From contig CATNEN010000033.1 in NCBI GenBank assembly GCA_950097015.1, positions 930,001-994,000 of the forward strand: 64,000 nucleotides of DNA, written 5' to 3'. Made by a program: the position numbers and the translations under genes. The notes under the pieces were generated by a model that saw nothing but the letters and a program-made list of their open reading frames with translations, was not told where the DNA came from and did no database searches. The stretch is from Macrostomum hystrix (lineage: Eukaryota; Animalia; Platyhelminthes). Shown here in pieces: positions 25,074 through 59,100 of the stretch (the stretch's first letter is position 1; the number at the start of each line of letters is the position of its first letter).

Positions 25074-26688
25074 TAGCATTTTGCAGTCTAGTTTGGACAG
25101 CGGGCTTTTAAATTGGACGCAGGCCGCGGTCAGCCGCAGCAGCCTGACTGCAGTCTATGGCCCAACCTGACACGCAGGCGCGGGATTTCAAATTGGACAG
25201 CGGGCAGCAATTTGGATACAGTGAGCAGCAAAGTATACTCGTAGCAGCTGCTTGTATTTTAAACGAGTGACTAGGATATCCAATGCAGAACAATTTCAAA
25301 ACAGTATAGAAAACAGTAACCGTAACTCTAGTTCAAAACAGTAACGGTATAGTTCACATCAGTTTGCTGCGAGAAAATGTCTAAGATTACGCATCAATAG
25401 CAGCTCCGGCCAAGCAGCGCGGAATGTAGCGCAAAGTGTGCTGATACCACGCAGCGCACTTCTGCTTCGTGATGCTGTCAACCGCTGCTTCCCCGCATCT
25501 CTGCAGCACCATCACTCTCCACTCCCTGTCAGTTAGTCCTGGAGGTTTAAATGCCAGTTCTTGCTGCACAACTGGTTCAGCCAACTGTTGCTTCACTTGC
25601 GCTTTGAAAGCGCTGTGAGCCAGTTCAACCGGATTGAGAAATGGCGAGTAGGGCGACATGACCAGAGTGCTGAAGCGGTGCCGGTGCTCCTCCGGAATCT
25701 GCAGTCCGAGGTGAAATCGTGCACCATCCATTACGATCACGCAGTGCTGCTGGTCCTGCAGTTGCTGGGAAATTGCTTCGCAGACTTGGCCCAAAAGTAC
25801 CTGAACGTTTTCCCTATTCACAGTACCGGCTTGCATGCTGTAGGCCACCAGGCCGAACGACGGTGATGTCGCCAGGATCACGTTCAGCGCTGGACTTCTC
25901 TGAGTGTGAACTTCACGATGAACCCGTTCACCAGGCACGCTTCTGCCAAAACTGCGACGAGTCCACACTCCGAATCCAGTTTCGTCCAGGTGTACGAGCT
26001 CAGTGAACGGAGGCAGGTTGACGAGCCAGTTGGCAAATTCATGCCTCTTCTCCCTGTTCTCTTCAGAATTTCGAGCAGCTGGAACATCTGCTTCCCTTGA
26101 CGGACACTTCATGGTGAACAGCTGGCCATCAAGCGCCCGCGAAATGGAAGAAATGTCAACGGTTGCGAGATCGCCATGAAATTCAGCAAGCAAGCGCACA
26201 CGCATTTGGTCCAAGGTCAGGAAGGGATTATCCTGAACAATGGACACCAGGAAATCCCTCATCGGGGCAGTGAGCTTCCGCGCTGCTTTGCTCCACCTCT
26301 TGGCAAGGCGTATCGCCTGCCACCATTACGAAATGTGTTCCATATGTTGTACGCTGTGCTTCGCTTTACTCCGAACATTCGGACAATGTCATCAGGATTC
26401 TCACCACGTTGCCAGGCCTGGATCACGAGATCTCGCTTCTCTCTGGTGATCGTAGCGTAGTGTCCACGCTGCATGCTAGCGCCTCGCTGTGTCCAAACTT
26501 TTTATTTTCTCGTCAGGGACCCTGTAGTTTGTTGTTGTTGTTGTGTCCAAATTGCTGCCCGCTGTCCAATTTGAAATCCCGCGCCTGCGTGTCAGGTTGG
26601 GCCATAGACTGCAGTCAGGCTGCTGCGGCTGACCGCGGCCTGCGTCCAATTTAAAAGCCCGCTGTCCAAACTAGACTGCAAAATGCTA
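25074..26688 (-). mobile_element. Tc1/mariner-IS630 superfamily DNA transposon, ~1.6 kb
   Basis: Near-perfect ~146-bp TIRs (25074-~25219 and ~26543-26688), flanking TA at both ends, transposase on the minus strand. Confidence 0.95.
25387..26474 (-). pseudogene. DD33E transposase split by a 1-nt frameshift between the HTH and the catalytic region
   Basis: ORF 26474-26259 encodes the HTH (DIVRMFGVKRSTAYNIW...GG). It shifts near 26280 into RKLTAPMRDF and continues through 26262-25387 with HLDETGF, VMDGARFH and PYSPFLNPVE. Confidence 0.85.
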
Positions 26689-27722: not shown

Positions 27723-30700
27723 TCACAAGTAGAACAGGCGGTCGCAGATGGCCTCTGCGGGCTCCACCCCAATGTTCTGGCCCACCATGTACACCAGCTT
27801 GTGGGCGTACTGGCAGGGCGCTGGCACTCGGATGGAGCCGGCCCAGTTGTAATAAAGATGGCAGCTGCGGAAGGTGAGCTGCTGAATCTCGTCCACGGGC
27901 ACATCACCATTGCACTCCACCACAATATAGTGCGTGGGCGTCACAGTGCCCTGAGTCACGTGCTGCGGCACCAGGAAGAAATCCATCATGTCCGGCCGCG
28001 TGATGGAATGGTCCAGCACGGTGCCTGCGGGCGGGGATGAGCGACTTTACCGATACTAGGGATCTGCGAGAACTGCCGCACTGGGATCTGGGAGGACTGC
28101 CGCACTGGAATCTGGCAGGACTGCCGCACTGGGATCTGGCAGGACTGCCGCACTGGGATCTGGGAGAACTGCCGCACTGGAATCTGGGAGAACTGCCGCA
28201 CTGGGATCTGGTAGAACTGCCGCACTGGGATCTGGGAGAACTGCCGCACTGGGATCTGGGAGAACTGCCGCACTGAAATCTGGGAGGACTGACGCACTGG
28301 GATCTGGGAGGACTGCCGCACTGGGATCTGGGAGAACTGCCGCACTGGGATCTGGCAGAACTGCCGCACTGAAATCTGGGAGGACTGACGCACTGAGATC
28401 TGGGAGGACTGCCGCACTGGGATCTGGGAGAACTGACGCACTGAGATCTGGGAGAACTGCCGCACTGAAATCTGGGAGGGCTGACGCACTGGGATCTGAG
28501 TGGACTGCGCAATGGGCGATCGGGGAAGAGCATGCGTTACTCAGAATAATGATGGAATGGAATGCCACGTAGATGGCATTCCATTCCTGACTGCTCAGGA
28601 CCTGACTGCTCAATCAGAAGTGCGGCTAGGCATGCCGTTTTGCTCACCTGGCGGAGGATTCGAGTAGGCGTTGCCCTGACGCAGGAAGAGGCGCTGATTG
28701 ATTCGCTTCTGGACCACCAGAAACACCAGCTTGGGCCTGTAGTTAGGGTCGATGCCCTTGGCCGCCTCGTAGATGGCTCGCACCTCCTGCTGCTGCACCT
28801 CTCCAACCTGTTTGTCTGAGACGCCGTCGCGAAACACGAAGATGACGTTGGGCGGAGCGCCGACGTTGTTCATGTAGCGGATGAGCTGGGCCTGCAAGAT
28901 GACGCGCATAGAGTCCAGAATCTCCTGGCCTTTGCGCTGGAAGGCCACCCGAGAGTACCAGCGGGTGCAGGCCTGGTCAGCTGAGGCCACAATGCCCGTC
29001 ACCGACTTGGTGCGCGCCTTGTCCGCGTGGTAGACATCGATGCCCACCATCTGCGGGAGCGGAATGCGCAACACATGCTACTCACAGTACTGAGGCATTC
29101 CTAACTGGCATGATGAGCGAGTTGGTGAGGGTCTGGGTGAGTTAGTGAGGGGCAGGGTGAGTTAGTAAGGGGCTGGGTGAGTTGATAAGGGGCTGGGTGA
29201 GTTGATAAGGGGCTGGGTGAGTTAATAAGGGGCTGGGTGAGTTGGTGAGTGAGTTGGTAAGGGGCTGGGTGAGTTAGTAAGGGGCTGGGTGAGTTGATAA
29301 GGGGCTGGGTGAGTTGATAAGGGGCTGGGTGAGTTAATAAGGGGCTGGGTGAGTTGGTGAGTGAGTTGGTAAGGGGCTGGGTGAGTTAATAAGGGGCTGG
29401 GTGAGTTGGTAAGGGGCTGGGTGAGTTAATAAGGGGCTGGGTGAGTTGGTGAGGGGCAGGGTGAGTTGGTGAGGGGCTGGGTGAGTTGAGTTAATCTAAG
29501 GACTCGTTCAGCTCACCATGAACCGCTCGTACGGAATGTCGATGCCCCAGAGGGCGCCTCCCAGCTTGACGTTGATCTGGGCAGCAACATTAACGGCCAC
29601 GCTGCCCATCTTCTTGGGATCGCCGATGGTCTTGGTCCACAGGCACTGGGTGGGCACCACTAGCTCAGTGCAGCAGAGCCTCTTGACCATGTTGTAGCGT
29701 TCCTCACGCTGCGAGGTGAACACGGTGCAGACCAGATTCAGGTCAGTGCTGAAGTTCTCTCTGATGGCCTTAGTGTAGTTTGTTGTCGAATCATTCTGCA
29801 GGGCCACCGTGATTGGCTGGGCGATGGTGATGCCCATGGCGCGGCACTTCTTCATCATTGTCTCGCAGAAGGAGCCGATGGTCCGCTCCTCCCTGGCGGG
29901 GTAGACCACCAGCCACTTGGACAGGCGGCCGTCAATCAGCACCCGATTGTCAGCCAGGGCCCTTTTAAACTCGCTGGTCTGGCCAACTGGCACCGGAGCG
30001 AACGGGCCGCGGCCGCCGCTGCCAAACAGGACCCGCTCGTTGACGAAGCGGCGGGCCGACACGGAGTCGGGCTCTTCAAGGAGGCGCAGGCCCCAGGCGT
30101 CCAGCAGTTTGCGGCACTCCGGTCGGTTGTTGATTGTCTGGACGAATTTGCGCAGCTCGTGAAGCCGGCGGTCCGGGGACAGCTGGAAAAGTTGGGTTTG
30201 AGCAGAGCTTGAGCACATTCTCAGGATGTGAAAATTCCCACATTTCCATTCACAGATCAGCGACTCACCTTCGTGAACTTGGCCAAATCGCGCATCAGGT
30301 GAAAGTTGCGCCGCATCTCATCAGTGAGTCCAGTGACATAGCACAGTTCAGGCACCAGACAGACCTGCCGCTGCTCCAGGGTCTTGCCATCTGTTCCTCG
30401 GACTGGCTTGCCACGGCTGATTAGCATAGGCTGCTGCGGATCCTTAATTTCGATGTTATAGGCCTGCTTGTAGTAGTCTAGGAAGGACATTTGCGTGCCA
30501 TTGCGGTCAAAGGTGTGCGTGCAGTCCATCGATGTTTCAATCTGGTCCACGCGCATGATCTTGTTGTTGTACCGGGTTACAACCGAGGTGCCCACAATGG
30601 CATCCGTCATGGCGTCGATGCGAGTGCCCAGCGACTGGAACAGGTCATAGACAGTCTGGGACCGCACGACCCGGTGACTGGACTCCACCATCAGGCGAAG

Positions 30701-32100
30701 GCCGCCGTCCACGTGGCTGACGGAGGTGATGTACCCAGGCCAGACCTGCGGGAATGCCGAGTTTCAGCTCACTTTGATTGGCTACTCAATATGCCAATAC
30801 GATAATTTAGCTCATAAAAAGTCTGGATGTATAGACTTACTGTCTTCCAACCACATGACAGGCCACTAAACACACACCCACATGGTTAGCAACTACCCAC
30901 ACACCCACATGGCTAGCACCTACCCACACACCCACATGGCTGGCACCTACCCACACACCCACATAGCTGGCACCAACCCACACACCCACATGGCTGGCAC
31001 CAACCCACACACCCACATGGCTGGCACCAACCCACACACCCACATGGCTGGCACCAACCCACACACCCACATGGCTGGCACCAACCCAAACACCCACATG
31101 TCTGGCTTGTACTCAAACGGCTGACCCAGTGATTTGAGCAGGACTTTGAGTTTGCGCCACTCACCTCCATCTGCTGGCCGGGAACTCTCTCGCTGGCGTG
31201 CGGATTGTAATAATGCCGGCGAACTTCGATGAGGTCCATCCGAGCCTGGATGGAGCGGAAGATTATGTTGTAGACGCTGGGCAGGCTGGACAAAGTGGCA
31301 GTGCCAACCAGTTGCAGCTGGATGGACACTCGCATGTTGCCGGAGGCAGCCTGGTACACGCCGCACTCCCTGGGCAGCGGCCTGTTGGTGTAGAGCGAGT
31401 TGCCCGAGGGCACGCGGCCTGGTACGCTCTGGAAGTCCGGGTCCTGAATGGACATGACAAGCCTGTCCCGCTGCATCCGGGAGTCCACGCTCGGTTTGAA
31501 AAGTATGCTGTACTGATACACCAGGCAGTCCGCGCCTTCCACTCGCAAGAAATTTGTGCCCAGTGTCAGGCGCTGGCCAGCCGAGCCCTGTTTGTCTGCC
31601 GGACCCACTCGCTCAACGCGAGGCGGCCGGGGTCGGCTAGGACGAGCGCCGGAGCCGCCAGCTGACGCCTGTGCTGAAGCGGAAGGAGAGACTGAAGAAG
31701 CCTGTTGCGTTGGAGCGCCCTGGATGGACATGCGGCTCATAGCCTCTGGCAGTGTGGCTGGTGGAGGAGCACCGCCGCGGCCGAAACCACGACCGAATGC
31801 AGCTGCTGCAGCTGATGGGCCAGTGGTGGTCGTCAATGCCGCTGAGTCTCCAGCACCGCTCGGCTGCTGAACAGCACCACGACCAAAAGAGGCCATGCCA
31901 CGCCCAAAAGCAGCCGGAACGGCAGACACAGGAGCGGCAGCTGCGCCAGCAGCAGCATCTTGAGGATCCGCCATAGATCTAGCTCTACCAACAGCTTGGG
32001 GCATGGCGGTAGAGGCGCCAGCACCTGCTGTAGCAGTGTCAGACTGTTGTGACAGGCCAATTATTAGGCCACGGCCCAGTTGGCCACGTCCAAAGCTCAT
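27723..32100 (-). CDS. piwi: Piwi-clade Argonaute, 927 aa, five coding exons
   Basis: Exons 32100-31165, 30745-30269, 30182-29517, 29050-28648 and 28024-27723 with canonical GT-AG sites and consistent phases (0,0,0,1); total 2784 nt. GRG-rich N-terminus, VWPGYITS, PAZ (VVTRYNNK, FLDYY, LVPELC), MID (RYNMVKR, PTQC, QINVKLGG), PIWI catalytic D-E-D-H (GIDVYH, GQEI, FRDGV, YAHKL) and C-terminus DRLFYL. Confidence 0.97.
28068..28500. repeat. 24-bp minisatellite in piwi intron 4 (CTGGGATCTGGGAGAACTGCCGCA)
   Basis: Tandem copies; explains ORFs 27904..28533, 27986..28489 and 28056..28613. Confidence 0.95.
29130..29490. repeat. ~20-bp minisatellite in piwi intron 3 (GGGGCTGGGTGAGTTGATAA)
   Basis: Tandem copies. 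Confidence 0.95.
30865..31105. repeat. 27-bp minisatellite in piwi intron 1 (ACCCACACACCCACATGGCTGGCACCA)
   Basis: About 8 tandem copies. Confidence 0.95.
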
Positions 32101-34278
32101 TTTAAACAACTGGCCTAATCAGTTGCGCAAATATGTTTTTCGATCTCTCAGTAGATTTGTTTCTTTTTAGCAAATGCTGATTTTGTTTGTAAGCCGCTTT
32201 ACTTTAATGGATGATAAGTTTATTGCTAGAAATGTGTGGGTGCACAGATATTAGCATGTTTAAGGTAGCAAAGACTTTATTGGTAATTTTATAGAGGAAA
32301 TACAAGTAAGATTTTCAAAACATGCATTAAATTCAAATTTGGGTAACTTTGTAAGTAGCCATAAAACAACAGATTGCTCTTATAGTTTCAATTATATTTA
32401 TAGTTAATAGAAGTGAACTGTAAAGCTAGCTAACTAAAATGACTATAATGATAAAAGTCATAAATTTAGATATAACAGAATAAAAATTGCAAACAACAAA
32501 TGAAAATTAAAACACAAATAGCAACAACTTGGCTTGATATATGATAAGGTAAGAGAAAAAACACATTTTATGCCTTATGGCAAATACAATAGCTATAATC
32601 ACTAGCTTTCTACTACAGACATGTCATCATTTACTTAGAGAAGTGCAGTTGCCTTAAGCTAGTCAGCGGAAAGTTGTACTACACACAATTAGCATTGTAC
32701 TTTTGAGTTAAAAAATATGCTGTTGTGAATAGCCATGAAAATCAAAATGGCTATTCATATAATATAAAACTGTTTTGTATTTTATATATTATTTGAACTT
32801 ATGGGTTAATGTAGGATATTATTTGTAGTTTCCAGCTTGGCACTACACACCAGAATACCTATTGCACACAGAATGTGTTGTATAGGAACCAAATTATGTG
32901 ACTTTTTAACCTATGCATCTGGTGCATGAGTTAAATAATTTAAAGTGGCTGGCTAAGACAAGGCTGACATGAAGTATCAGATTTTCAATTAATTCTGTCT
33001 CTACTCCCATTGCTTAAAATTCAAAAATTTCAATAACCAAATGTCAACACACATTCTTAAGACATTAACATTGCTCAGTGTTGGGCGCATTACTTAGTAC
33101 TAGTTTCCAAATTGGTAACAATCATTACTTTTTTGCATTGTCACTTTCTCCTGTTAGTATGTCTGGTAACAAAAATGATGGTTGCATTTTCATTTTCTTA
33201 TTGTAACAAGAATTATTTGTATTACTGTTACCTTACCATTTTTTCTATTGCTAATGTGTACTTACAGAATGTTTCTCTTAAATTTAAAATCAGTGGCACT
33301 CTAGTAATTTAGCTGTATAAAAAACATTTTTACTTGTTTATTTCTTTTTTATTTAAGAGTAAAACTACAAGTATAACCAGAAGTGTTACGACTTTTCTTT
33401 TCAATATTTGAACAGCACTAAAAGTAGGTTGAGTAGTAGAATTAGGAGTCAAACAGAAGAAAATTAAAAGATAAGATAGAAAGCTAAATAATGACATTAA
33501 TTAGTCAATGTCAAGTCAGAATCAAATCAACTAAATTCAAATCAGCTAGACCTATTTCATCAGGCCATCAGAATTACTTTACTTTTAGATTTCTGTCATT
33601 TTAACTGTTTCCATTTAAAGTGAGTACCATACCAAGTTAGCTTGAAGTTTAGTTAAACCAGACTTTCAAAAAAGTAGTAAATTGTTTTTTAAAAGTTCCC
33701 AAATAACTCTCAATTTTTTGTCTAGAAAAGTGGACAATGTTTGAAATTAAATTGTATGAATTATGACATGACAACAAACAAAGCTGCACATGTTTATAAT
33801 ATACTTTACCACTAAAGCATATTTATGGTCAAAGAAAGTATAAAACACAAAAAGTAATAAATAAAAGTAATGATTGTTACTATTTTTTGCTCTTCTGTTA
33901 CTCAATTTTTCTATTACCAAATGGTCAGTAATGATTGTTATATCCACTCCTGTTCCTTTTTGGTACTATGCCCAACCCAGACATTGCTCCATTTTTATCA
34001 GTCACCGTATAAATATATTTCTGTTTGGTAAATACATTAATAGCAATTTTGTTATTTGCATTGTTTCATTTTAATATCACATTATATCACGTGATTTTAT
34101 TCAACTTAAGCAACAAGCTAAAAAACAAAAATATTCATTCTACATTTTAACTAATTAAATTGAAACAATTTAACTAATTAGCAAACAAATAAGATAAACT
34201 GTACTGAATAAAGACTTTTTTAATTTAGATAAGCTAGGGCCTAATTCTAACTTTATTGAAGTGGGTCCTTTTATTTTA

Positions 34279-34825: not shown

Positions 34826-37800
34826 TTTTATACCCTAATGGTCAAACTTTTAGCTGAAGTTAAGCTTAAGAAATTGTTTAAAGCCAAAAAAGGCTTAGGC
34901 CAAATTTCTTTCATCAAAATGGGTGGAATCACAAGGCCCAAGAAAGATTTAAGCAAACTTTTACAAATGGCATAGAGCTAACACCGTGTCCCAAAACAAG
35001 TTAATGTTAACATGGTTTGATATATTATAACATTTTTAAGTAAAAAAGAAAGTTATTAAATAAAGTACTAAAATACTACATTTTTATAGATAGGCCAAAA
35101 GCTTGGGTTATGCAAGACTACAGCTGGCATATAGAAAGTAGCAATTTTCTATAAACAACTAGTGCACTATTGTATAGACAGCTTAATTCTAAATTATAGA
35201 CCAACAGTGAACAGTTATTAAAGAGCTGAATTAAATAAATAATACAGTGCAAACATATGCCAGGAACTGGGGCATAGGTCAGCTAAAGCGAATGCTAAAT
35301 AGATGAGTTAACAAGCAAACGAATATTGCAGGACAGAATAGCTAAATAAATTACATTCATAATGCTACTATAAAATAAATAATGCAAATAAAATGTGTAC
35401 AAGCCAAGTAATTTAGACATTATTTGTACAAGCAAATATCGTTCTTGGTATTGATAGTTTAGATTTTAGATTAATTATCGCTTTTAAATAAATTTGCTAA
35501 TATCCATGACCATGCCGAGCCGAAGCGGACGATATTAATAACGGCGCTAACAAATAAGTACAGGTTAAAGTGTTCGAAAAAAAATATTGAATGCAGCACT
35601 AACCAATAATATCTTACTTATTATAACAAAACATTATTAGACAATTTAAATATTTAATCAATATTTTTTAAAGATTGTATATTTCCTCGTTTTAAATTAT
35701 AATATGAAATTCTTGATTGACCGTCAAGGCAACGTTTAACAAAAGGCTCTTCGCTTCTTCTTAAAATTCAGAGCACGAATTAAAAAAATCTACCGATTGC
35801 ATATGCTTGAGAATAGCCTTGAATTGAGAATATCGAGCGTTACCGAGCGTTTCGATGATGAAAATGAAGAATATTCTATACCGAAGTAGCGAAATAGTTG
35901 AAATAGCGATTACTGACAAATGTTTCGCTTTTTTAATGATCTGGCGAAATTTTTCCCTTTGTGGTGCATCTGTTCAATACTACTTCTCGCGATAATTCAA
36001 ATTAGGGCTATTCTGCCTTTAGTAAAAAAGGTAAAACCTATTTTCATAATTTACTTCTCATTAATATCGGACAATGCAAAACTCGTAGCTTAGCATACCT
36101 TAGATCAATATCTGTCGTACCTTACACCAATACCTAAGATCAATAAGAGCTGTTATTTTTTATTGCCTTCGTTTCAATCGTTTTTATGGCTTATATACAT
36201 TTAATTATATAAGCCATAGGTGTAGGCCATGCGAACTCCTAAAAATGAAAAATTTTAGCCAGTTTATCTTAGCAAGAAGCTTTTTGCAATAAAATGCTGG
36301 CACATGTACAGAGATTCTTTCGTACTTTCCGTCGACCACTTTATCAGCTATTGCTGGGGTTAGCCTATTGAATGTATGAAGGTATAATAATAATAATAAT
36401 AGTTACGTCCCACGCCGACCACGAAAAGTGGCGAAGAGGGGGGAGCGTCAAATCTCGCGCTTCAGTGCCAGGTCTCTGATGTGCTTCACGCCTGCCGCCT
36501 GGCTGGGTGCTCGGGCGTCTTCAAAAAGTCGGTCGATTTAGCGGGCTGATCGTCCCTGGCCGCGCCTGCGCGGTCCCTGCGAGGTCCACAGCAGGACATC
36601 CTGCAGCGGCTCTGGGCAGTATGCTTCGGCGCGGATGACATGCCCGGCCAGCCGCAGGCTGACTCAGCAGGACAGAAGGCCGCGTTAGGCGCGCACGCTG
36701 GTAGAGGGACTTGGTTGTCTCGCTGCCAGGGCCGCGGCGGGCACCGAAAGCGGCGCGAACTAGGGCCGCGTGTGCCGCGTCGAGCTGCGCCTCGAGCACC
36801 CCGGTCATCGTCCAGGTCTCAGCATTGTACAACAGGGCGGTCTCGACAACCGCCTGGAACAGCTGGGACCTGGCGCCGTTCGACAGGGCCTCGGAGAGCA
36901 GCACCGCCCACACAGAACGATAGGCGGCACAGGCCTTGCCGCGTCGTCTCGCCAGGTCGTCGCCCACGTCAGGCACCAGTCCGCCAAGATAGACGAACTG
37001 ACGGCACTTCGGGAGCACGGTCCCGGGGCCGTTACCGTCTCTTAGTCGAATCTCGGCAGGTAGGTTTTGCGGCAGGCCGGCCGGAACCCATTCTGCTCGT
37101 ACCGCAGAAACGAGTCCAGCACAGGCTGTAACCGTGCTAACAGCACCCGGTTGAACAGCTTCGCGGTACAGGACATAAGCGAGATCCCGCGATGCTCCTC
37201 CTTCCGCGTAGTGCCCGGCTTCTTCGGGATGCCGACGATGGTTGCCTGGGTCCACTCGCGGGGCGCAGGGCCTCCAGCCAGGTTCACAACGTTCACAACG
37301 GTCCAGACGACCCTGTTCTGCCGTTCAGGCCCGACAGAGGTGACAGCCCGGATCGCGTCGTCAACAGCGGCTTTCTGTCGACTTGCGTAGGCGTCTGCCA
37401 GGGCCTTCTCGGCATCGGATGTCGGTCGCCTGGCTCGCCGCAGATGTTCGACAGTGCGGCGGGCCTCACGGACCTCCGGGTCGCTCGCCCAAACTGGAAG
37501 TTGCCGTGACGCGGGTTCCATAAGCGGCAGAGTCTTGGCAGCGGCAGTGGCGATGGCTGAGTTGATTGTGCTGTAGTCCGGCGCCTGTGCTGATCCCAGA
37601 GCGGTCGCAAAGGCGTACGCAAACCTGCTGCGGGTGCCTGGGTCTTGCAAGGCGCGAAAGTACCTTCTTCTAGGGCGTTTTGGTGGACGGTACAGCGGAT
37701 CAGAGAGCCTCAGGTCGCAGTAGAACAGGCGATGGTCGGACCGGACAGCCAAGGGTTTCATTGTGTCGCAGTTCTGCAGCCGGCTGCGTTCGCGATGGCG

Positions 37801-38269
37801 AATCAGCACGTGGTCGAGCTGCGCCAAGCGGGTCGTGGCGAATCGGCCTCGCGCGTTCCGCCTCCTTCGCTTGCAGCCGGCGAAGGTCGCCAGCCGGTTG
37901 GGCGGTTTGCGGAAGCGCGTGTTGGCTGACACCAGGTCGAGCCTCGCCATCAGGTCCGCTAGCGCGGCGGTGTTGGCGTTCTGGCGTGGCGACACAAACG
38001 GGCAGCGCTGGGACCGCGGTGCTACAGCGTTGAGATCACCAAGCATCACCACAGTGTCGCGGTGCGCCACCATCTCGAGCTGCTCCGACAGGAACTCGAA
38101 GAATTCCTGCACCTCCTGCTGATGGGCAGCTGTGGGAGCGTACGCACAGAAAAGCCGCACATTGCGGCGACGTAGTCTCACGTCCACGCGCAGCAGTCGG
38201 GCTGACAGGCTGACGCAGCAGATGCTCTCGCGTAGCCGTGGTCCGACAAGCACGCCGACTCCTCCGCGG

Positions 38270-38337
38270 GCCTGTCAAACGGAGCTCCCTTCACGTGGGG
38301 ACAGGTGCCACAGACGCGTTCTGTGCCAAATGCTCCG
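38270..38337 (+). ncRNA. HDV-like self-cleaving ribozyme at the 5' end of the Ingi-like element
   Basis: Hand fold: P1 GCCTGTC (38270-76)/GACAGGT (38300-06) with G1-U wobble; P2 CGGAGC (38280-85)/GCTCCG (38332-37); P3 CCC/GGG; L3 TTCACGT; single-bp P1.1 C38292-G38307; P4 CACAGA/TCTGTG; J4/2 CCAAAT with candidate catalytic C38327. Confidence 0.85.
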
Positions 38338-38357
38338 GCTCCCCGGATGTCGCTTCG

Positions 38358-41300
38358 ATGTCCGCACCCCAACCCGCTGGCGGGTTTTTGGGAGGGTGGC
38401 AGGCCAACCCCGACTGGTCTCGCCGCCGGGTTCTGTTGTCGGGGGATGTTGAGACGAACCCCGGTCCTATCCAGGCCGATCTCCGTGTCCTGCAGTGGAA
38501 CCTAAACGGGCTACAGGCGCGTCGACCGGCACTTGAACGGCTGCTGGAGGAAAACAAAATAGACATCGCCCTTCTGCAGGAATCTAACCTCACCGAGAGA
38601 GAGCCCACACCCAAGTTCCGCGGCTACACCGTCCACCGCCGCGACCGGGTCGTCCACCGGGGGGGTGGCGGTCACCATGGAGGCCTGCTCACTCTGGTCA
38701 AACAAGGCCTGGCCCATGAAGAGGTGGAGGCGGGTCTGCGGACCCCCGTCAACGCGGCCCTGGAGCAGCTGACCATCCGTCTGTTCGGGGACAAGTCCAA
38801 GCCGCTGCACCTCACCAACCTCTACCGCCCACCTGTACGGCACTCCGACGCGGACGACCGGGACGGGGCCCTACACACCAACGGCTGGCCCACCGATGGG
38901 CACTGGCTGCTGATGGGCGACCTCAACGCTCACGGTAGCTGGGACCCGAATGCTGATCCGGACTCCCCGGGAAGCGAGCTCGACGATTGGCTGAGCGACC
39001 ACGGCTGGATGGCGCTCAACGACGGCAGTGCCACTAGAGTGAGCCCGGGGGGTGGTGAGTCGGCGCCCGACGTGTCGCTCTGCAGTGCTGTCTGGTCCAG
39101 CCGGATCAGCTGGCGCGTGGGGGACGCCATGGGGTCGGACCACCTTCCTCTGCTGCTGACCATCGCCTTCACCCAAACCCATGAACGCCGCCGCCCAGCT
39201 GGCTTCAACCTGCGACGGGCGGACTGGCCGACCTACGCGACGCGGGCGGGTGATTTTTTCCTGGGCTGGCCGGCGGACGGCTTTCGGTCCGTGGAGGCCG
39301 CCAATGCAGACTTCTGCCGCAGGATCCTGGAAGCGGCGAGCTGCATCCCCAAGGGCAGAGTTAAGAAGGCCAAGAGCTGGTGGGACGAGCGTTGCAGACG
39401 GGCCCAGGGCGCCACTCGCGGCGCCTTAGCGGCAGCCAGAGCCGCGCCAGGTGACTTGGAAGCCGCGGCGAGGTACCGCGCTGCCCGCGACCAAGCCGAC
39501 CGAGTGTACCAACAGGCGAAGACCGAGTCCTGGCAAGGTTTCGTCGCGGAGCTGTCGGCCAGGTCCCCAGACAACAAGGTCTGGAACACCATCAGGGCCC
39601 TCGATGGCCGAGCGCATGAGGGCCCTTTGACGACCTGCAGACGCGGCCGATGACGAGGACCCTGGTGGCAGCGATCGACTTCTTCGCTGCTTTTGACCGA
39701 ACCTGGCGCCTCGGGGTGCTTCGGCAACTGGCTCGAGCGAGCGCCCCGGGACGGTGGCTGCGCTGGATCCGCGCGTTTCTGGCTGACCGGAGAGCTCGAG
39801 TGCGCTGGGTTGATAGCATGAGCCGCCCCAAGATCCTGAAGGAGGGAGTCCCGCAAGGCAGTCCGTTGTCCCCGCTGCTGTTCAACATTGCGACCTGTAC
39901 CCTGCCAGCCGCCATCCAGTCCGCCGCCCCGCTCTGTAAGCCGCTGCAATACGCCGATGACCTGTCCATCAAGACGTCGGCGGGCACTGCGGCGGCAGCG
40001 GCGGAGAACATGCAACAAGCGTTGGAAGCGGCAGAAACCTGGTGCCAGCAGCATCACTTCGAACTGGCCCCAAACAAGACCGAGGCCCTGCTGGTGAGTA
40101 CCCATCCAGTGGAGAATACCGAGGCCTTCAGCAACTCTGTTCAGCTCCAGGTCGGTGGGCAGACGATCAGCTGCCAGAAGGAGGCGCGCATCCTGGGGGT
40201 GTTCGTGGACTCCCAGGTCACCTTCGCCGAGCAGGCCCGCCGCGCGCTGGCTGCCATGCGGAGCCGGCTCAACGCCCTGCGGGCTGTGGCTTCCCGCCGG
40301 TGGGGAGCTGACGCTGATACGCTTCGTCGGCTCTACTGCGGCTACGTTCGCCCGGCGGGGCTGTACGCGGCAGAGGTGTGGTGGCCTTTTCTGGCTCGCA
40401 CCCACCGGGAGCGGTTGGAGTCGATGAATTACGCCGCGGCCCGGGCTATCACCGGTGTCAGTCCCGGTGCCCGGGCTGCTGCGCTGATCGCGGACGCCGG
40501 GCTACAGCCCCTGGACGTCATTTGCCGGATTCGGGCGGCTGAGCTCTACCTGCGATGCCGCCAGTTCAGCGAGGACCACCCGCTGCGGAAGCTAACCGAC
40601 GCCCCGCCGAACACGACGAGACTGCGGTCGAGAGGGGGCGGGACCCGCGGGTGCTGGAGAGAGACGGCGCTTGCGGCCCTGGAGGAGGCGGGATGTCACG
40701 CTAGGAACATCGAGGGGTGCGTTCCGCTCTCCTGCCTGCACCGGCCGTGGACCCCTCATCACTCGGCCCGCTTCGCTGCGGCGGATGCTGGGCGCGAGGA
40801 GCCCCCGGAGGTCCGACGCGCGAGGGCCTTAGAACTGCTGGACTCCCTTCGCCGGAGCGACCCGCCGTACCTCCAAATCTGGACAGACGGGGCGGCGGAA
40901 GAAGGCTTCAGAAATGGCGGAGGAGGCTACATCATCCGGCGTCAAGCTATCGGCCCCGACGTCAAGGGCAGTATCCCGACCGGACGGTGGACCAGTTCGA
41001 CCACTTCAGAAGCGGCCGCGGCGGCGGCGGGGCTCGAGGCAGCCCTCGGTCTCCTTCGGGGGAAGCCGAGCTCGGCGATCTGGCTGCTGTTCGACTCACG
41101 AGCCCTGTTCCAGCGGCTGCAGTCCTCGACCAAGTGCCTGCAAGACCACGCCACCGCGCAAGCCGCGATCCTGCTCCAACAGCTGGCCAGCGAGCACAGG
41201 CCAACGGTCATCTGGATCCCAGGGCATGCAGGCCTTGCGCTTAACGAGGCCGCCGATGAGCTGGCCCGGAGAGGGTCCGCCATGCAGCAAGACCCCCAGC

Positions 41301-41731
41301 CAGTCCCCGTGTCGGCCGCCAGGGCCGCCCTCCGTCGCCAGGGACGAGCGGCCGAATTGGCTGAGTATAATCAGCTGGTTCCGGCGGACCACCCCCACAG
41401 GCTCTGCGGCGGAGCGCAGTTCATCCACCGGCCAGGCTGGCCGCGGACGGCCGAGGTGGCGCTGTACCAGCTTCGGGCCAACCGGGCGCCCTTCCTGCAG
41501 GCCACCCGGCATCGTTGGGGCCGCGACCCAACCGCTGCCTGCCCGCACTGCAATGCCCCCGAAGAAGACACCCGGCATTTCCTGTTAGACTGCCCCAGGT
41601 GGGCGGAGGAGCGCCGGCTTCACATCCCAGAGGCTATCAACGGCTCTATGTCCCCACTGCAGAACGACCCAGAAGGGGTGCGGGCCTTCGTCGAGGCGTC
41701 GGGCGCGCTGGCGCGCCCCCCGTATGCCTAG
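38358..41731 (+). pseudogene. Ingi-like polyprotein (2A-APE-RT-RNase H) broken by an internal deletion and frameshift near 39610-39650
   Basis: First in-frame ATG after the ribozyme is at 38358 and the frame runs to TGA at 39653. A second frame (FDDLQTRPMTRTLVAAIDF...) runs to 41731. The early RT motifs (PKPGK, YRPISL, Q.GFR) are absent at the junction. Confidence 0.85.
38412..38468 (+). other. 2A-like ribosome-skipping (StopGo) peptide DWSRRRVLLSGDVETNPG|P
   Basis: Exact match to the D(V/I)ExNPGP consensus at 38445-38468, in frame and immediately upstream of the APE domain. Confidence 0.88.
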
Positions 41732-42269
41732 CTTGGGATCCGAACCAACACACACACACACACTCCTCCGCGGCCTCTGCTGTCCGCTGACGTGTAGTGC
41801 AGCGTCCAGCCGCTCCCCAGATCCTCACGGTGTAGGCCAGCAGTGATTGACACCTCCTGCAGCTAGCATGACGAGGTCCAGCCGCAGGTCAGATGCCAGC
41901 TTTGCGAGCATGCCCCTTCTCCAGGCAGACTTTAGTTGAAGGTTGCTAGCCTTAGAGCGCGGTTTGTAAAGGCTGGGGCCCGATGTTGGTGGGCCTCACG
42001 GTCCCCGGCGCCACCCGGCGGAGCCGGCTGGGCGGGGGTCGGCAGATCAGTGTTGCCAGCAGATTGGCGGAGGCGGCCTTTCATTCGCCCTCGCCAGTTG
42101 CGTTCCCTTCGCCGCTCGGTGCGACGTCGGGTGCTTCGCTGTCCACGCCGTCCTCCCGACCTGCCGCACTTGGCAGCCGCAGCACCAGGGCGCGGCTCTC
42201 CGTGTTGGCCGAGGCAAGCGCTGGGGGCTCCAGCGTCACCAGGAGGCGCGGCATTTATTTGCACTAGGG

Positions 42270-44146: not shown

Positions 44147-47100
44147 ATGGCAACCAGGCCACTACTTTCTCGCAGAGTCTCCACACAGCTGCTACTTACG
44201 ATCGTGCTGCTGCTCATTCAAGAGTCGCATTCGTCAGAGCTGCAGAGCGATCGCCGGGTCAGCTTTCAGACTGGGGTGTACCCGGGCGATCTGCTGCTGG
44301 GAGCCCTGTACCCCCTGCACTACGCCAACCTGTCCGCTGGGCCCTGGGATCGCTGCGGCCGTCTAAACCCGCTGGAAGGCGTCCAGGCAGTGGAGGCGAC
44401 TCTATTCACCCTGGAGCGCCTGCGACAGTCCGGCCTGCTGGCTGGCAACCTCAGCATCGGTGCCCTAGCGGTGGACACCTGCCAGGATGTGGACGTGGCG
44501 CTCAATCAGTCGTTGAACTTCACCAACGCTTTGGCTGCCGGGGCGCTGCGCCGTGGACTCATCCGGTGTCCGGCCGGAGGCCAGCCAGCATTCGTAGCCA
44601 ATGCCGGCGCTAGCGTAGGAGGCACCGACGGTGTCATCGGTCTGCTAGGAGCCGCCGAGAGTGACGTTACTGTAGCCATAGCCGGCTTCATGAAGCACTT
44701 CAGGGTGCCGCAGGTAGGGCTGGTTGTAGAATTTTTGTTTTTTAAGATTCACCTCCTATCCCACAGGAATCCCTAACGCCTATCACTCTTCACATTTCCA
44801 GCCAACTCGCTCCATTTCCTAGCCTCCCGATCACAGTTCGCGCCTCGATCCCCCCAACCCCCAGCCCTCTAGCCTAGCGCTCTCCACTCTTCACTTGTCC
44901 AGCAACCTCGCTCCATTTTCTACCCTCCCAATTCACACCTCGAGCCCCCCAGCCCTACACTCCCCATCTTCAATTCCCAACCACCTCGATCCATTTTCTA
45001 CCCTCCCAGTTAACACCTCTATCCCCCAACCCAACACTCTTCACTCTACGCTTGTCCAGCCACCTCGCTCCATTTCCTACCCTCCCTGGTCACACCTCGA
45101 GCCCCCAGCCCTACACTCCCCATCTTCAATTCCCAACCACCTCGATCCATTTTCTACCCTCCCAGTTAACACCTCTATCCCCCAACCCAACATTCTTCAC
45201 TCTACGCTTGTCCAGCCACCTCGCTCCATTTCCTACCCTCCCAGTTCGCTCCTCTATTGCCCAGCCCAACGCTCTCCACTCTTCACTCTTAGAAACGCTG
45301 CCACAGAGCCCTGCAATAAATTAACACACAGGGCTATCACATAAGTTTCTGGCCCGTTTTGCAGCCAGAGTTCGCCAAAAAAACTCCTGGATGAGCACAT
45401 TTGTGTCTCAGAATTCGGCACTGCCGATTGACAAGTCAGTTGAATATGCAAATTACTAGATAAATTGGTATCTAGTCGTATCGTTTTTAGGCGCAATGGT
45501 CGCTATTTCCTTGTGAAAAGTAATTGTCTGGCCACCTAATTTCTATTCATTGAATATTGTGTCATTTTTCATACAAGTACTCGTATTTTAGTAAGGAGAT
45601 TCGGTTTATCCATTAGGAAGGAAATTTTAACAGCAAAAACTCCCATGATCTTCATAAGAGTAGAAATTTGAAAATTATTCCTCCAGGTGTTTAAGAAACT
45701 AAATACAAAAGTTCTTTTTGAAGTGAAACTCCCTTACCCTTGTCTGTGGACTAGGTTATCCTCCCTTACCAAGTCTGTGTATGCGATAATACCATGGTGA
45801 GCACCATGCGCTAGTGTTAAGATCTAGAATGATTAATAGTTAATATGAAAATCATGCCCAAATTTAGTGGTAGTGAAATCACAGATAAAAGTACACAGTC
45901 CTGGGCCTAGCAAACAGACCGGTAGAAGCGCTCAACCAGCAGTCAGGTCCACGCACAGCCGCTTTCCAGGCAAAGCAAACAGAAGAAATTCCTGCAGATA
46001 TTTGCTTTCCCCCCCGACTCATCAATTCTCAATTCAGAAGATTTTTTCTAAGAACTCTCGCTGCCCAAGTCACGTGATACGAAGCTGGGGAGCGGAATTG
46101 GTGGGGGGTAGAATGTTCCCTTCGCGGTGACTTCCCTTCCGCACGGTCACTCAGCTCTGCTTCATTCATCGGCCAAGCAACTGCTTAAATTTCAGATCAG
46201 CTACCTGTCCACCTCGCCGATTCTGAGCTCCAAGGAGAAGTTCCCCTACTTTCTGCGCACGGTGCCATCCGATTCTAATACAGTTCGAGGCATTGTGGAC
46301 CTACTCAGGTGAGAAGCTGCTATAGTAATACTAGTAACAACAAAATAAAAAAATAGAAATAAGAATAAAATTAATATAAAAATTATTTTAGTTTCATCCA
46401 GTAAAAAATATATCTTGAGTATAAATTATAGATAAAGAGAATGATATAAACATTAAATTATTAAATTGTTAAATTATTATTATTATTATTATTATTAAAT
46501 TATTAAATTAAATTAAATTTATAACTAATTAAATAATACCAATAATAGTTTAACAACACCGACGAGAACAACAACAGAAATCTTAAAAACAAAGAAATTA
46601 TTAAAATTATATAACAATATTATTTATTTAAAAGTATTGCTAACAATTTTCCTCCTTGCTTAATCGTTTCTATTTGTTAATATTTGTTTTTTATTAGCAT
46701 TATTATTATCTTATTATTACTAGCTTGGAGACAATTCTGATTATTCGGTTGACTCCTGAGCACACTGAGCACACGCAGATACCGTTCGCAGGCAGTGTCT
46801 GCCCACTGAATTTTTCATTTTAAATTGGCTCTCTAGGGCGTATATTGGGCCCAAATGAATGTGGCCTCGACGCGGAATCGAGCTCAGGGACCTTGGTGCG
46901 AGAGACAAATGCGTGAAACTCTCTGCATGCCATGAACCCGAGTCGCTGCATTATGCCATTAATATGCCGGGGAATTCTCGATGTTTCTTTGCAAGACATG
47001 CAAGGTGAAACAGCCCACTCGGTTACAAGTCCTTGAATGGTCCTCAACGTGAGTAGGCTCCGCTTCTAAAAGAGAAGAAATATTTTTTCTTAGATTCGAA

Positions 47101-56100: not shown

Positions 56101-59100
56101 CGAACTGTTCAAATTTCACAACGGAGTCGATGGACCGCCTGAATACTCCATCCAATACTACAATGCCTCTAAGGAGCAGTGGATCACGGATGGCAACTAT
56201 ATTGGTGAGTAATAGATCCCAGATCGTAGATCCCAGATCGTAGATCCCAGATCGTAGATCCCAGATCGTAGATCCCAGATCGTAGATCCCAGATCGTAGA
56301 TCCCAGATCGTAGATCCCAGATCGTAGATCCCAGATCGTAGATCCCAGATCGTAGATCCCAGATCGTAGATCCCAGATCGTAGATCCCAGATCGTAGATC
56401 CCAGATCGTAGATCCCAGATCGTAGATCCCAGATCGTAGATCCCAGATCGTAGATCCCAGATCGTAGATCCCAGATCGTAGATCCCAGATCGTAGATCCC
56501 AGATCGTAGATCCCAGATCGTAGATCCCAGATCGTAGATCCCAGATCGTAGATCCCAGATCGTAGATCCCAGATCGTAGATCCCAGATCGTAGATCCCAG
56601 ATCGTAGATCCCAGATCGTAGATCCCAGATCGTAGATCCCAGATCGTAGATCCCAGATCGTAGATCCCAGATCGTAGATCCCAGATCGTAGATCCCAGAT
56701 CGTAGATCCCAGATCGTAGATCCCAGATCGTAGATCCCAGATCGTAGATCCCAGATCGTAGATCCCAGATCGTAGATCCCAGATCGTAGATCCCAGATCG
56801 TAGATCCCAGATCGTAGATCCCAGATCGTAGATCCCAGATCGTAGATCCCAGATCGTAGATCCCAGATCGTAGATCCCAGATCGTAGATCCCAGATCGTA
56901 GATCCCAGATCGTAGATCCCAGATCGTAGATCCCAGATCGTAGATCCCAGATCGTAGATCCCAGATCGTAGATCCCAGATCGTAGATCCCAGATCGTAGA
57001 TCCCAGATCGTAGATCCCAGATCGTAGATCCCAGATCGTAGATCCCAGATCGTAGATCCCAGATCGTAGATCCCAGATCGTAGATCCCAGACACCCAAAA
57101 GCAAAGTGCCGTGTATTGTTCAGTTGCGTGAATAATACAATAAAATGGACACAATGACTATAGGAACCAGGAACTACACGGAGCGGCTGATTGTCGGCCA
57201 TCACCTGGCCGCCGTAATCGCCAGCTTCCCAGAGTCGCGCTGCTCAAACGACTGCGAGAAGGACGAGGCCAAACAATTCCCGACAAGCAGTTGCTGCTGG
57301 ATCTGCATAAAATGCGGCAGGTGAGACTTAAAGAACTCAAAGTATGTCCTCATATGCATCGATGTGTGATCTGCGACGTGGGATCTGAAATGTAGGATCT
57401 GGGTTGTAGGACCTGGGGATTTAATATCTGGGATGTGGGATCTGCGATGTGTGATCTGGGATGTAGGACCTGGGGATTTAATATCTGGGATGTGGGATCT
57501 GCGATGTGTGATCTGGGATGTAGGACCTGGGGATTTAATATCTGGGATGTGGGATCTGCGATGTGTTATCTGGGATGTGGGACCTGGGGATTTAATATCT
57601 GGGATGTGGGATCTGCGATGTGTGATCTGGGATGTGGGACCTGCGATGTGGGACCTGGGATGTGGGATCTGCGATGTGGGATCTGGGATGTGGGATCTGC
57701 GATGTGGGATATGCGATGTGGGACCTGGGATGTGGGATCTGCGATGTGGGATCTGCGATGTGGGATCTGGGATGTGGGACCTGGGATGTGGGATCTGCGA
57801 TGTGGGATCTGCGATGTGGGATCTGCGATGTGGGATCTGCGATGTGGGATCTGCGATGTGGGATCTGCGATGTGGGATCTGCGATGTGGGATCTGCGATG
57901 TGGGATCTGCGATGTGGGATCTGCGATGTGGGATCTGCGATGTGGGATCTGACGTTGGCTGAATATCAATCAATTAGAGTTGTTTAATTCGTGAAGAATA
58001 TTCAAAAGATTCATTAGTGATGACGGGCCCTTATGAGCGTCAGCTGCTACTATTGACTCGGTAAATTAACTTTCGATTTTCTATCCCCGGACCTCCAGAT
58101 ATGACATTGTTGAAACGCCGCAGTCCGATTCCGATCGTCAGCTTCGATCATTGCCAATGACGGCATCGTCGACGTCAACGTCGGCGGCTGGCCGGCAGGT
58201 CTGCAAAACGTGCCAAAATGGCAGCCAGCCATGACGCGACCAGACGGACCTGCCTGAAGCTGCCTCTGGTGTGGAGCGGCTACAGTCACCCACACACCGC
58301 CCCGGTGGCAGTGATCTCAGCACTCGGACTGGTCACCACTGCCGCATTCGGCCTGGTGTTTCTGTGCAAGCGGGACACGCCGCTAATCAAAGCCTCCTGG
58401 TGAGAAAGGAAGACTGAGCAATATAAGAAATGGAAAAAGTTGCATGCGGAGCTAATCAGCAAAGTTATGTACGAGATAACTGCTCACAGATGTTCGATTT
58501 AGATGTAGCTGAATTACACAATTTCTTCTTGTACGTTGAAAAGTCCGAAGTCAGCTTTTCACGAACTTTGAAACCCTTTATTCTTTAGTCCTAAAAACTT
58601 CGGTCACGCTTAAATGCCGTCACAGGCTAAATGACGTCACAGTTCAAATTACATATCATTTTTAATATCGTCACAGCACATTCTTTTAACTTCACAGCTC
58701 AAATCACGGCGCACCCTAACTGCGACGTCACATTTTAAGCTATGTCATCGTTTAAATGACGTCACAGTTTTATTGACGGCTGTATCAATAACGTGATTGA
58801 AAGATATTAAAACGACGTCACGGCTGCAATGTAGTCCTAATCAGTATTTAAATGACTTCACAGTTCAAATGACGTCACAGTTAAAATGACATCGCATTTT
58901 AAATTACGTCACAGTTAAAATGACGTCACAGTTTAAAAGACGTCACATTTTAACTGACGTCGTAGTTTAAATGACGTCAAGCTTGAATGACGTCGCATTT
59001 TAAATGCCGCTACAGTTTAAATGACGTTGCATATTAAGTGACGTCGAATTTTAAATAACGTCCAATTTAAAATTACGTCTAATTTTTTAATGACGTCACT

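Follow-up and report, generated by a model that had tools for sequence, protein, structure and literature searches.

The stretch analyzed here, 64,000 nt from the genome of the flatworm Macrostomum hystrix (contig CATNEN010000033.1, positions 930,001 to 994,000 of the forward strand; hereafter the window, whose own numbering is used throughout), carries a non-LTR retrotransposon (one that lacks long terminal repeats, LTRs) of the long interspersed nuclear element (LINE) type, and the beginning of this element raises a simple question: is it a genuine expression cassette, composed of a self-cleaving ribozyme and a viral-type 2A (StopGo) peptide placed ahead of an endonuclease, or does it only look like one? 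A first-pass annotation of the window had proposed the former, with a tiny leader peptide beginning at an ATG as part of the cassette, and had left undecided whether the pairing was already reported in this lineage. We consider it probable that the locus holds the 5′ expression cassette (hepatitis delta virus (HDV)-like ribozyme plus 2A) of a non-LTR retrotransposon, preserved in a dead copy of the element. As judged by comparison with related elements, the cassette is real and its two parts are co-conserved, while the 5′-OH end, the cap-independent translation, and the ribosome skipping that it implies would follow from what is known of other families.

The element occupies positions 38270–41761 (3,492 bp, plus strand, as are all of its features given below), and these limits are set by its target-site duplications: the 12-mer at 38258–38269 recurs at 41762–41773, and at the 3′ copy its first two bases could equally belong to the (CA)n tail. 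At the 5′ end, the initial 68 nt (38270–38337) fit the nested double-pseudoknot topology of an HDV-like ribozyme, with the paired regions P1 to P4 in canonical order, and would be expected to self-cleave in the Mg-dependent manner of such ribozymes, which leaves a 2′,3′-cyclic phosphate and a 5′-OH. P1 has 7 bp (38270–38276/38300–38306) and opens with a G.U pair, P2 has 6 bp (38280–38285/38332–38337), P3 consists of three G-C pairs (38287–38289/38297–38299), and P4 has 6 bp (38309–38314/38320–38325); all pairs of the four helices are standard. The helix fit also places the 7-nt loop L3 (38290–38296) and the 6-nt joining segment J4/2 (38326–38331), which begins with C-C-A-A. Cleavage is predicted 5′ of position 38270, the first base after the target-site duplication. 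Since a loose ribozyme descriptor matches about once per 5 kb (26 candidate sites in the 128 kb made up by both strands of the window), the chance that a cleavage site would fall on the exact boundary base is about 2e-4. The fold ends at 38337, so the distance of 20 nt from the ribozyme to the ATG at 38358, as originally annotated, stands; the spacer between them (38338–38357) holds an out-of-frame ATG at 38347.

As Rfam gives no match for this segment and its folding energy is not significant, the case for the ribozyme rests on its relatives. When the endonuclease piece of the element was run against 1.84 billion representatives in a full HMMER search, 6,149 matches were obtained, the best of them at 46–47% identity, and all those looked up come from metagenome contigs. 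The DNA was taken for ten 2A-bearing relatives (named L001–L004 and L022–L027), again all metagenome contigs, with protein identities of 30–49%. MAFFT misplaced the structural elements of the ribozymes wherever P4 or P2 differ in length; a three-sequence alignment (the window, L022, and L023) was used to build a covariance model, R1, restricted to P1, P3, and P4 with P2 left out, and the model realigned the rest. R1 recognizes five independent relatives, L001 (52.8 bits), L027 (40.6 bits), L026 (38.5 bits), L003 (36.7 bits), and L004 (30.2 bits), and each of these matches sits just upstream of the 2A sequence; in L001 and L003 the fold, with different helix sequences, was also found by the descriptor. 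R1 gives nothing below E = 1 in the rest of the window or in a set of 17 endonuclease loci that have no 2A, and in 100 bacterial and viral control loci (710 kb), preselected for the same core letters, it reaches at most 18.6 bits. The 17 loci, obtained from a protein-alignment scan of metagenomes, are distant endonuclease genes with neither 2A nor ribozyme, and were kept as negative controls. A degenerate core pattern, drawn from the loop letters shared by the relatives and intended for searching only, also has matches in bacterial and archaeal (>120) and viral (7) contig collections; these are not relatives, none exceeds 18.6 bits, their numbers are close to chance on a rough estimate, and they were used as a specificity control.

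In a nine-sequence R1 alignment, to which P2 was added as a pseudoknot, 94.4% of the cells show standard pairing, against 44–50% when the partners are slid, changes on both sides are seen at 20 of the 22 pairs, and none of 500 shuffles reaches any of the measures. P2, which lies outside R1, covaries at all six of its pairs. The nine sequences all start J4/2 with C-C-A-A, in agreement with the conserved J4/2 cytosine that acts as the general acid in HDV-like ribozymes, a role for which these Cs are candidates, and six have G.U as the first P1 pair, the usual one for this class. No two-pair version of P1.1, the mini-helix between L3 and J1/4, fits, a single C-G pair being possible; L1TcRz, of the trypanosome element L1Tc, likewise has a one-pair P1.1 (PMC3185411). 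The model matches and the covariation together uphold, as a structured HDV-like fold, the ribozyme that the first-pass annotation had placed directly upstream of 2A; on this comparative evidence, it is an HDV-like variant that current Rfam models miss.

The second part of the cassette, the leader with its StopGo/2A module, covers positions 38358–38468. Translation from Met 38358 gives a 36-residue leader that ends at the Gly of NPG and is followed by Pro, and the frame runs stop-free into the Exo_endo_phos domain (residues 45–262), in full agreement with the annotation of an in-frame apurinic/apyrimidinic endonuclease (APE). NPGP is encoded at 38457–38468; the predicted skip lies between Gly (38463–38465) and Pro (38466–38468), and this Pro sits four residues before the endonuclease start. 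The octapeptide fits the published StopGo core motif, (D/G/C/N)(V/I)ExNPGP, for which classes of upstream hexapeptides have also been defined (PMC12846837), and the six residues before the core look, by eye, like the 'LLLLSG-like' upstream class of that work; a StopGo peptide calls for a tract of no fewer than 6 residues ahead of its core, and ideally one of ~20–30. The coding stretch of 27 nt is unique in the window. NPGP lies ahead of the endonuclease in 49 of the best 150 representative relatives, and is present in 42 of the 95 representatives having at least 30 residues upstream of the endonuclease.

The family-conserved stretch of approximately 30 residues begins near 38367. Upstream of the core, column shares reach 89% for Gly at −5, 72% for Leu at −9, 61% for Leu at −10, and 42% for Phe at −24, which indicate a conserved module of some 25–30 residues, a size close to that of the ribosomal exit tunnel. 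Across 11 loci, G, D, N, P, G, and P never vary, while the codons for Gly and Pro include all four synonymous forms, which argues for selection on the peptide and not on the RNA. Some relatives carry altered cores, with E→H in 19% and E→S in 2% of the columns. By analogy with characterized 2As, ribosome skipping would be expected at the window 2A.

All ten relatives keep 2A, and in nine of them a ribozyme lies 114–174 nt upstream of the N codon (seven strong R1 matches, two of which are the model-building sequences, one weak match, and one fitted by eye). The co-conservation of NPGP and ribozyme among sister elements, on which the annotated cassette depended, is in this way borne out. No other copy of the element was found in the 64-kb window by tblastn, by sequence pattern, or by the ribozyme model. 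The tails of the relatives are of the types (GA)n, (CAA)n, or (GAA)n, and no convincing target-site duplication was found in them. The only named relatives are barnacle proteins automatically named 'jockey', at 31% identity, and no trypanosomatid protein is present among the named or top matches. A word-index protein search with the endonuclease piece returned no match, and in exact-protein look-ups neither the downstream open reading frame (ORF) piece of the window nor the relative P0050 was on record.

Two side observations concern these relatives. Five distinct members (L003, L022, L025, L026, and L027) come from one European Nucleotide Archive (ENA) sample, ERZ925369 (run ERR688349), which evidently holds DNA of a eukaryote rich in this LINE family; a search of the literature for its project accession found no paper. 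In L026, a (GA)n run at 92–116 ends 17 nt upstream of the ribozyme +1 and is of the same repeat type as the 3′ tail of that element, a hint that copies may lie head to tail in tandem, as has been described for L1Tc.

Several observations weigh against the cassette. Even with E allowed up to 10, neither the window ribozyme nor nine relatives match an Rfam family, and Rfam searches at gathering and permissive thresholds gave chance matches only, none of them of HDV type; since the Rfam models are narrow, this lowers the claim to a sequence family and not the claim to the fold. The folding energy alone is unremarkable (z −1.06), and the P1.1 pairing is not confidently placed in the window. Among the relatives, L024 carries 2A and shows no ribozyme, the ribozyme of L002 fits by eye only and has a different L3, and L025 scores 15.3 bits with R1, within the noise range of the model, though its helices pair. 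In the wider group 2A is not universal, NPGP being absent from 53 of the 95 representatives with enough N-terminus. Finally, the ATG at 38358 is preceded by two out-of-frame ATGs and has a pyrimidine at its −3 position.

The start codon is where the original proposal needs revision. ATG 38358 is the third ATG of the element RNA, those at 38330 (inside the ribozyme) and 38347 lying in the other two frames. Five of ten elements have no in-frame ATG between the ribozyme +1 and 2A, and in two it lies inside the ribozyme; a start codon ahead of 2A is, to go by these sequences, not conserved in the family, and the tiny leader from ATG 38358 is likewise no conserved part of the cassette. The leader may not be AUG-defined at all: it could have a non-AUG or variable start, with 2A fixing the N-terminus and ATG 38358 being incidental, an alternative that we take seriously while holding it to be somewhat less probable than its opposite. 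The intact relatives L001 and L025, with approximately 1,280 and 1,300 open codons after 2A, agree with it, as their first in-frame ATGs lie 46 and 163 codons past 2A, inside the endonuclease. So does the 2A frame, which is open through the whole ribozyme in all ten elements, the last in-frame stop lying 3–79 nt upstream of +1. HDV-like ribozymes have, moreover, been proposed to act as starters resembling internal ribosome entry sites (IRES) in R2 and L1Tc (PMC6765202), and in RNA viruses translation without a cap can result from self-cleavage by itself (PMC13725137). The open frame was nevertheless rejected as a frame-specific sign of translation, because the other two frames are equally stop-free: from +1 to the conserved 2A start (38270 to ~38367 in the window), nine of the ten elements have no stop in any frame, and 29 of the 30 frame-by-element cases are free of stops between the ribozyme +1 and the 2A module. 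Equal-length upstream flanks hold 1–7 stops in one frame, and the depletion of stop triplets is modest for each element (a combination by hand gives ~1e-3). It must also be considered that ATG is rare anyway at 65% GC and that several of the relative contigs are fragments.

The remaining alternatives concern what the two modules do. The first 68 nt could act mainly, or also, at the DNA level, as an internal promoter like the Pr77 of L1Tc, in which case the RNA would begin at +1 through transcription and may be capped and scanned in the ordinary manner, with 2A tuning the amount of endonuclease-reverse transcriptase (RT) and not rescuing an RNA that lacks a cap. Pr77 requires CGTG at +25 to +28 (PMC4748587), and the window and four of the nine relatives have CGTG at these positions, two more having CGCG; the same 77 nt serve L1Tc as promoter and ribozyme (PMC3383444), and less of the downstream product is obtained with L1Tc2A (PMC5814959). 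This CGTG lies in L3/P3, however, and may be kept for the RNA fold alone, and the pervasive compensatory changes in P1, P2, and P4 show that base pairing in the RNA is under selection, for which a promoter acting as DNA has no need. We regard this explanation, which is in any case compatible with ribozyme function, as rather unlikely. A further reading, in which NPGP is only a remnant or serves some other function, for instance as an N-terminal signal sequence, and causes no skipping, appears very improbable to us. Some 2A-like N-terminal sequences do double as signal peptides (PMC4981915), several 2A-like sequences of Nematostella LINEs with altered key residues are inactive (PMC3708506), and altered cores exist in some of our relatives, as described above; the window core is nonetheless canonical throughout, the preceding residues are rich in Arg and not hydrophobic, selection falls on exactly the residues required for skipping, and the closest tested analogues, L1Tc and Ingi-1_AC, are highly active (PMC5814959, PMC3708506). 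Chance alone might be invoked for the presence of NPGP and of a GC-rich segment able to fold before an endonuclease ORF, given that GC-rich sequence folds easily, that the z-score is only −1.06, and that the loose HDV descriptor matches about once per 5 kb. Against this, both modules persist, with covarying pairs and synonymous codon changes, in relatives of less than 50% protein identity, and the predicted cut falls on the very boundary of the insertion. The chance reading, for which we retain a negligible probability, is already refuted by the independent R1 matches, the covariation, and the synonymous codon turnover.

If the preferred reading, an expression cassette of ribozyme and 2A, is correct, the 68-nt RNA head would cut itself exactly at the first base of the element, the structure being supported by comparison and the activity presumed, and the cut would free a unit-length RNA with a 5′-OH end from a read-through or host transcript. 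As the ribozyme stays on the RNA, it would be copied into each new insertion. Ribosomes would start shortly downstream, probably at AUG 38358 in the window element, no AUG being available for this purpose in many relatives. The 2A module of ~30 residues would then fill the exit tunnel, the Gly-Pro bond would be skipped and the leader released, and the endonuclease-RT polyprotein would begin at the same Pro wherever translation had started; the whole would operate in the manner of the Pr77/L1TcRz plus L1Tc2A head of L1Tc. More tentatively, ribozyme and 2A could form an obligatory unit, in which the uncapped 5′-OH RNA offers no fixed start and 2A trims the leader, and the cassette could be homologous between kinetoplastids and animals, being either ancient or horizontally moved; we hold this extension to be less likely than not. 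The argument for such homology, if true, lies in CGTG at +25 to +28 and in the overall layout, both in common with L1Tc.

The pairing, on whose novelty the first-pass annotation had not decided, is not without precedent: the 5′ end of L1Tc is known to have this layout (PMC3185411, PMC5814959). In this element of Trypanosoma cruzi, an HDV-like ribozyme in the first 77 nt cuts at +1 and leaves a 5′-OH product (PMC3185411), the 77 nt of the ribozyme double as an internal promoter (PMC3383444), and a functional 2A precedes the endonuclease (PMC5814959). The window element shares with L1Tc a single ORF that encodes APE, RT, RNase H, and, at the C-terminus, a zinc-finger region, an HDV-like ribozyme in the first ~70–77 nt (cutting at +1 in L1Tc and predicted to do so here) with 2A directly before the endonuclease, 12-bp duplications, and perhaps a minimal P1.1. 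CGTG is found at +25 to +28 in the window (38294–38297) and also in L001, L004, L026, and L027, and its placement may be a sign of homology with Pr77 or of a combined role as promoter and ribozyme; CCACC at +16 to +20 is absent in the window, in a comparison that covers the published 4–5-nt Pr77 motifs only. The two further differ in their hosts, a kinetoplastid for L1Tc and an animal here, in the tail, poly(A) in L1Tc and (CA)n in the window, with other simple repeats in the relatives, and in the conserved AUG, which the window family lacks.

Other systems resemble one half of the cassette. N-terminal 2As are known in animal APE-type LINEs of the Rex1, Crack, L2, L2A, CR1, and Ingi clades, and some are active, such as that of Ingi-1_AC from Aplysia (PMC3708506). 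These LINEs also have a single ORF and no ORF1, some of them carry 2A right before APE, and their hosts are marine invertebrates; no ribozyme is mentioned in PMC3708506, whereas the window 2A is tied to an upstream HDV-like ribozyme. Conversely, R2, R4, R6, SART, Baggins, and RTE use HDV-like ribozymes for 5′ processing and, as has been proposed, for translation initiation (Ruminski et al. 2011, as summarized in PMC6765202), an IRES-like role comparable to that considered here. No 2A is noted for these elements in PMC6765202 or in the R2 paper PMC3774820, R2 has a restriction-like endonuclease and not an APE, and the window ribozyme matches no Rfam model. Viral StopGo/2A sequences have the same core octapeptide and LLLLSG-like upstream residues, and the same skipping chemistry would be expected (PMC12846837, PMC12338488); the window 2A differs from them in belonging to a cellular retrotransposon and not to an RNA virus, and in its position at the extreme N-terminus, after a leader of ~36 residues, and not between two large proteins. 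Ribozymes in the 5′ untranslated regions (UTRs) of fungal and plant RNA viruses likewise combine self-cleavage upstream of an ORF with cap-independent translation (PMC13725137); they are mostly of other classes and belong to RNA viruses and not to retrotransposons, and the abstract of that work reports no link to 2A. The pairing of ribozyme and 2A outside trypanosomatids is seemingly unreported, a full-text literature search having matched only a T. cruzi review. Hence, the kind of arrangement is already known from L1Tc, while the family, the animal host, and the AUG-less form appear undescribed.

Downstream of the cassette, the polyprotein coding region (38358–41731) is broken by one internal deletion with a change of frame. 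It comprises the APE domain (38490–39143; Pfam PF03372, E 1.7e-12, and PF14529, E 6.2e-10), the RNase H domain (40871–41278; PF00075, E 1.2e-9), and a C-terminal Cys/His zinc-finger-like region (41420–41596), which aligns with the relative P0152 and whose Pfam zf-RVT match (E 0.0018) falls below the curated cut-off. The Pfam RVT_1 match is partial, covering profile positions 68–202 of 205. When compared separately, the two coding pieces cover residues 1–411 and 622–1308 of the intact P0152, so that with respect to this relative ~210 residues' worth of the RT region is missing from the window copy and the frame is changed; no further stop or frameshift was found in the coding region beyond this single break. 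As the ORF is broken once, the window copy is, from its sequence, a dead copy that cannot make the polyprotein, and the cassette cannot feed a polyprotein in this copy as had been suggested. Intact relatives have one ORF of ~1,280–1,340 residues with the same domains as the window element. The coding region is followed by a short 3′ UTR of 16 nt and an (AC)7 simple-repeat tail (41732–41761, the tail being at 41748–41761). The GC content of the element is 0.66, compared with 0.3–0.5 across much of the window. As seen with Pfam, it shows the L1Tc/ingi-clade feature of a single ORF, with no ORF1, that carries APE, RT, and RNase H and ends in zinc fingers; membership in the Ingi clade was not accepted, as the tail type differs from poly(A).

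The upstream flank, which the element either borders or interrupts, is a degraded and oppositely oriented LINE fragment (37042–38253, minus strand; weak Pfam Exo_endo_phos and RVT_1 matches), with tblastn RT matches at 37075–37281 on the minus strand. This degraded LINE, which can be followed over 36521–38253, retains the C-terminal part of the endonuclease and the start of the RT, and abuts the 5′ duplication of the element. On the other side, a GC-rich stretch past the 3′ duplication (41774–42260) has no protein match. The GC-rich block at 27900–32110 (minus strand) contains several minus-strand ORFs, one of which (29508–30218) is a PIWI-clade exon whose best solved-structure match is 'Piwi-A' (7kx7, E 4e-36), probably a sponge protein; the block is thus likely to represent a piwi gene of several exons. 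On the strand of the element and downstream of it, an ANF_receptor ligand-binding piece (44147–44776) and a 7tm_3 piece (60213–60767, E 2.6e-39) are likely exons of one class-C G protein-coupled receptor (GPCR) gene. A Tc1-like DDE_3 transposase ORF is found at 25387–26262 (minus strand); its best relatives are metagenome proteins (67%; one 93% partial), and the named ones are sea-urchin and hagfish proteins at 37–40% identity. Minisatellites are extremely dense in the window, with 42 rows of Tandem Repeats Finder (TRF) output, units of 6–245 bp, and some perfect arrays, such as that at 56213–57091 (14-bp unit, 63 copies, 100% identity), and the GC content of the window alternates between ~0.28 and ~0.67. 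The PIWI-clade exon, the GPCR exons, the transposase, and the many minisatellites point to an animal genome. A borderline Rfam tRNA match at 5155–5224 (plus strand; 31.8 bits for a gathering threshold of 29), for which ARAGORN makes no call, may be a tRNA-derived repeat or pseudogene.

The ribozyme-plus-2A head, so far seen only in L1Tc, is here extended to a separate and diverse LINE family with simple-repeat tails, which spans an animal genome and marine/coastal metagenomes. As Rfam models miss this ribozyme variant, similar elements have probably been overlooked in genome annotation; the finding also explains the arbitrary start codons that gene callers give to such ORFs. The AUG-less intact relatives provide a concrete case for the translation of uncapped, ribozyme-processed retrotransposon RNAs, and bear on why many single-ORF LINEs carry an N-terminal 2A.

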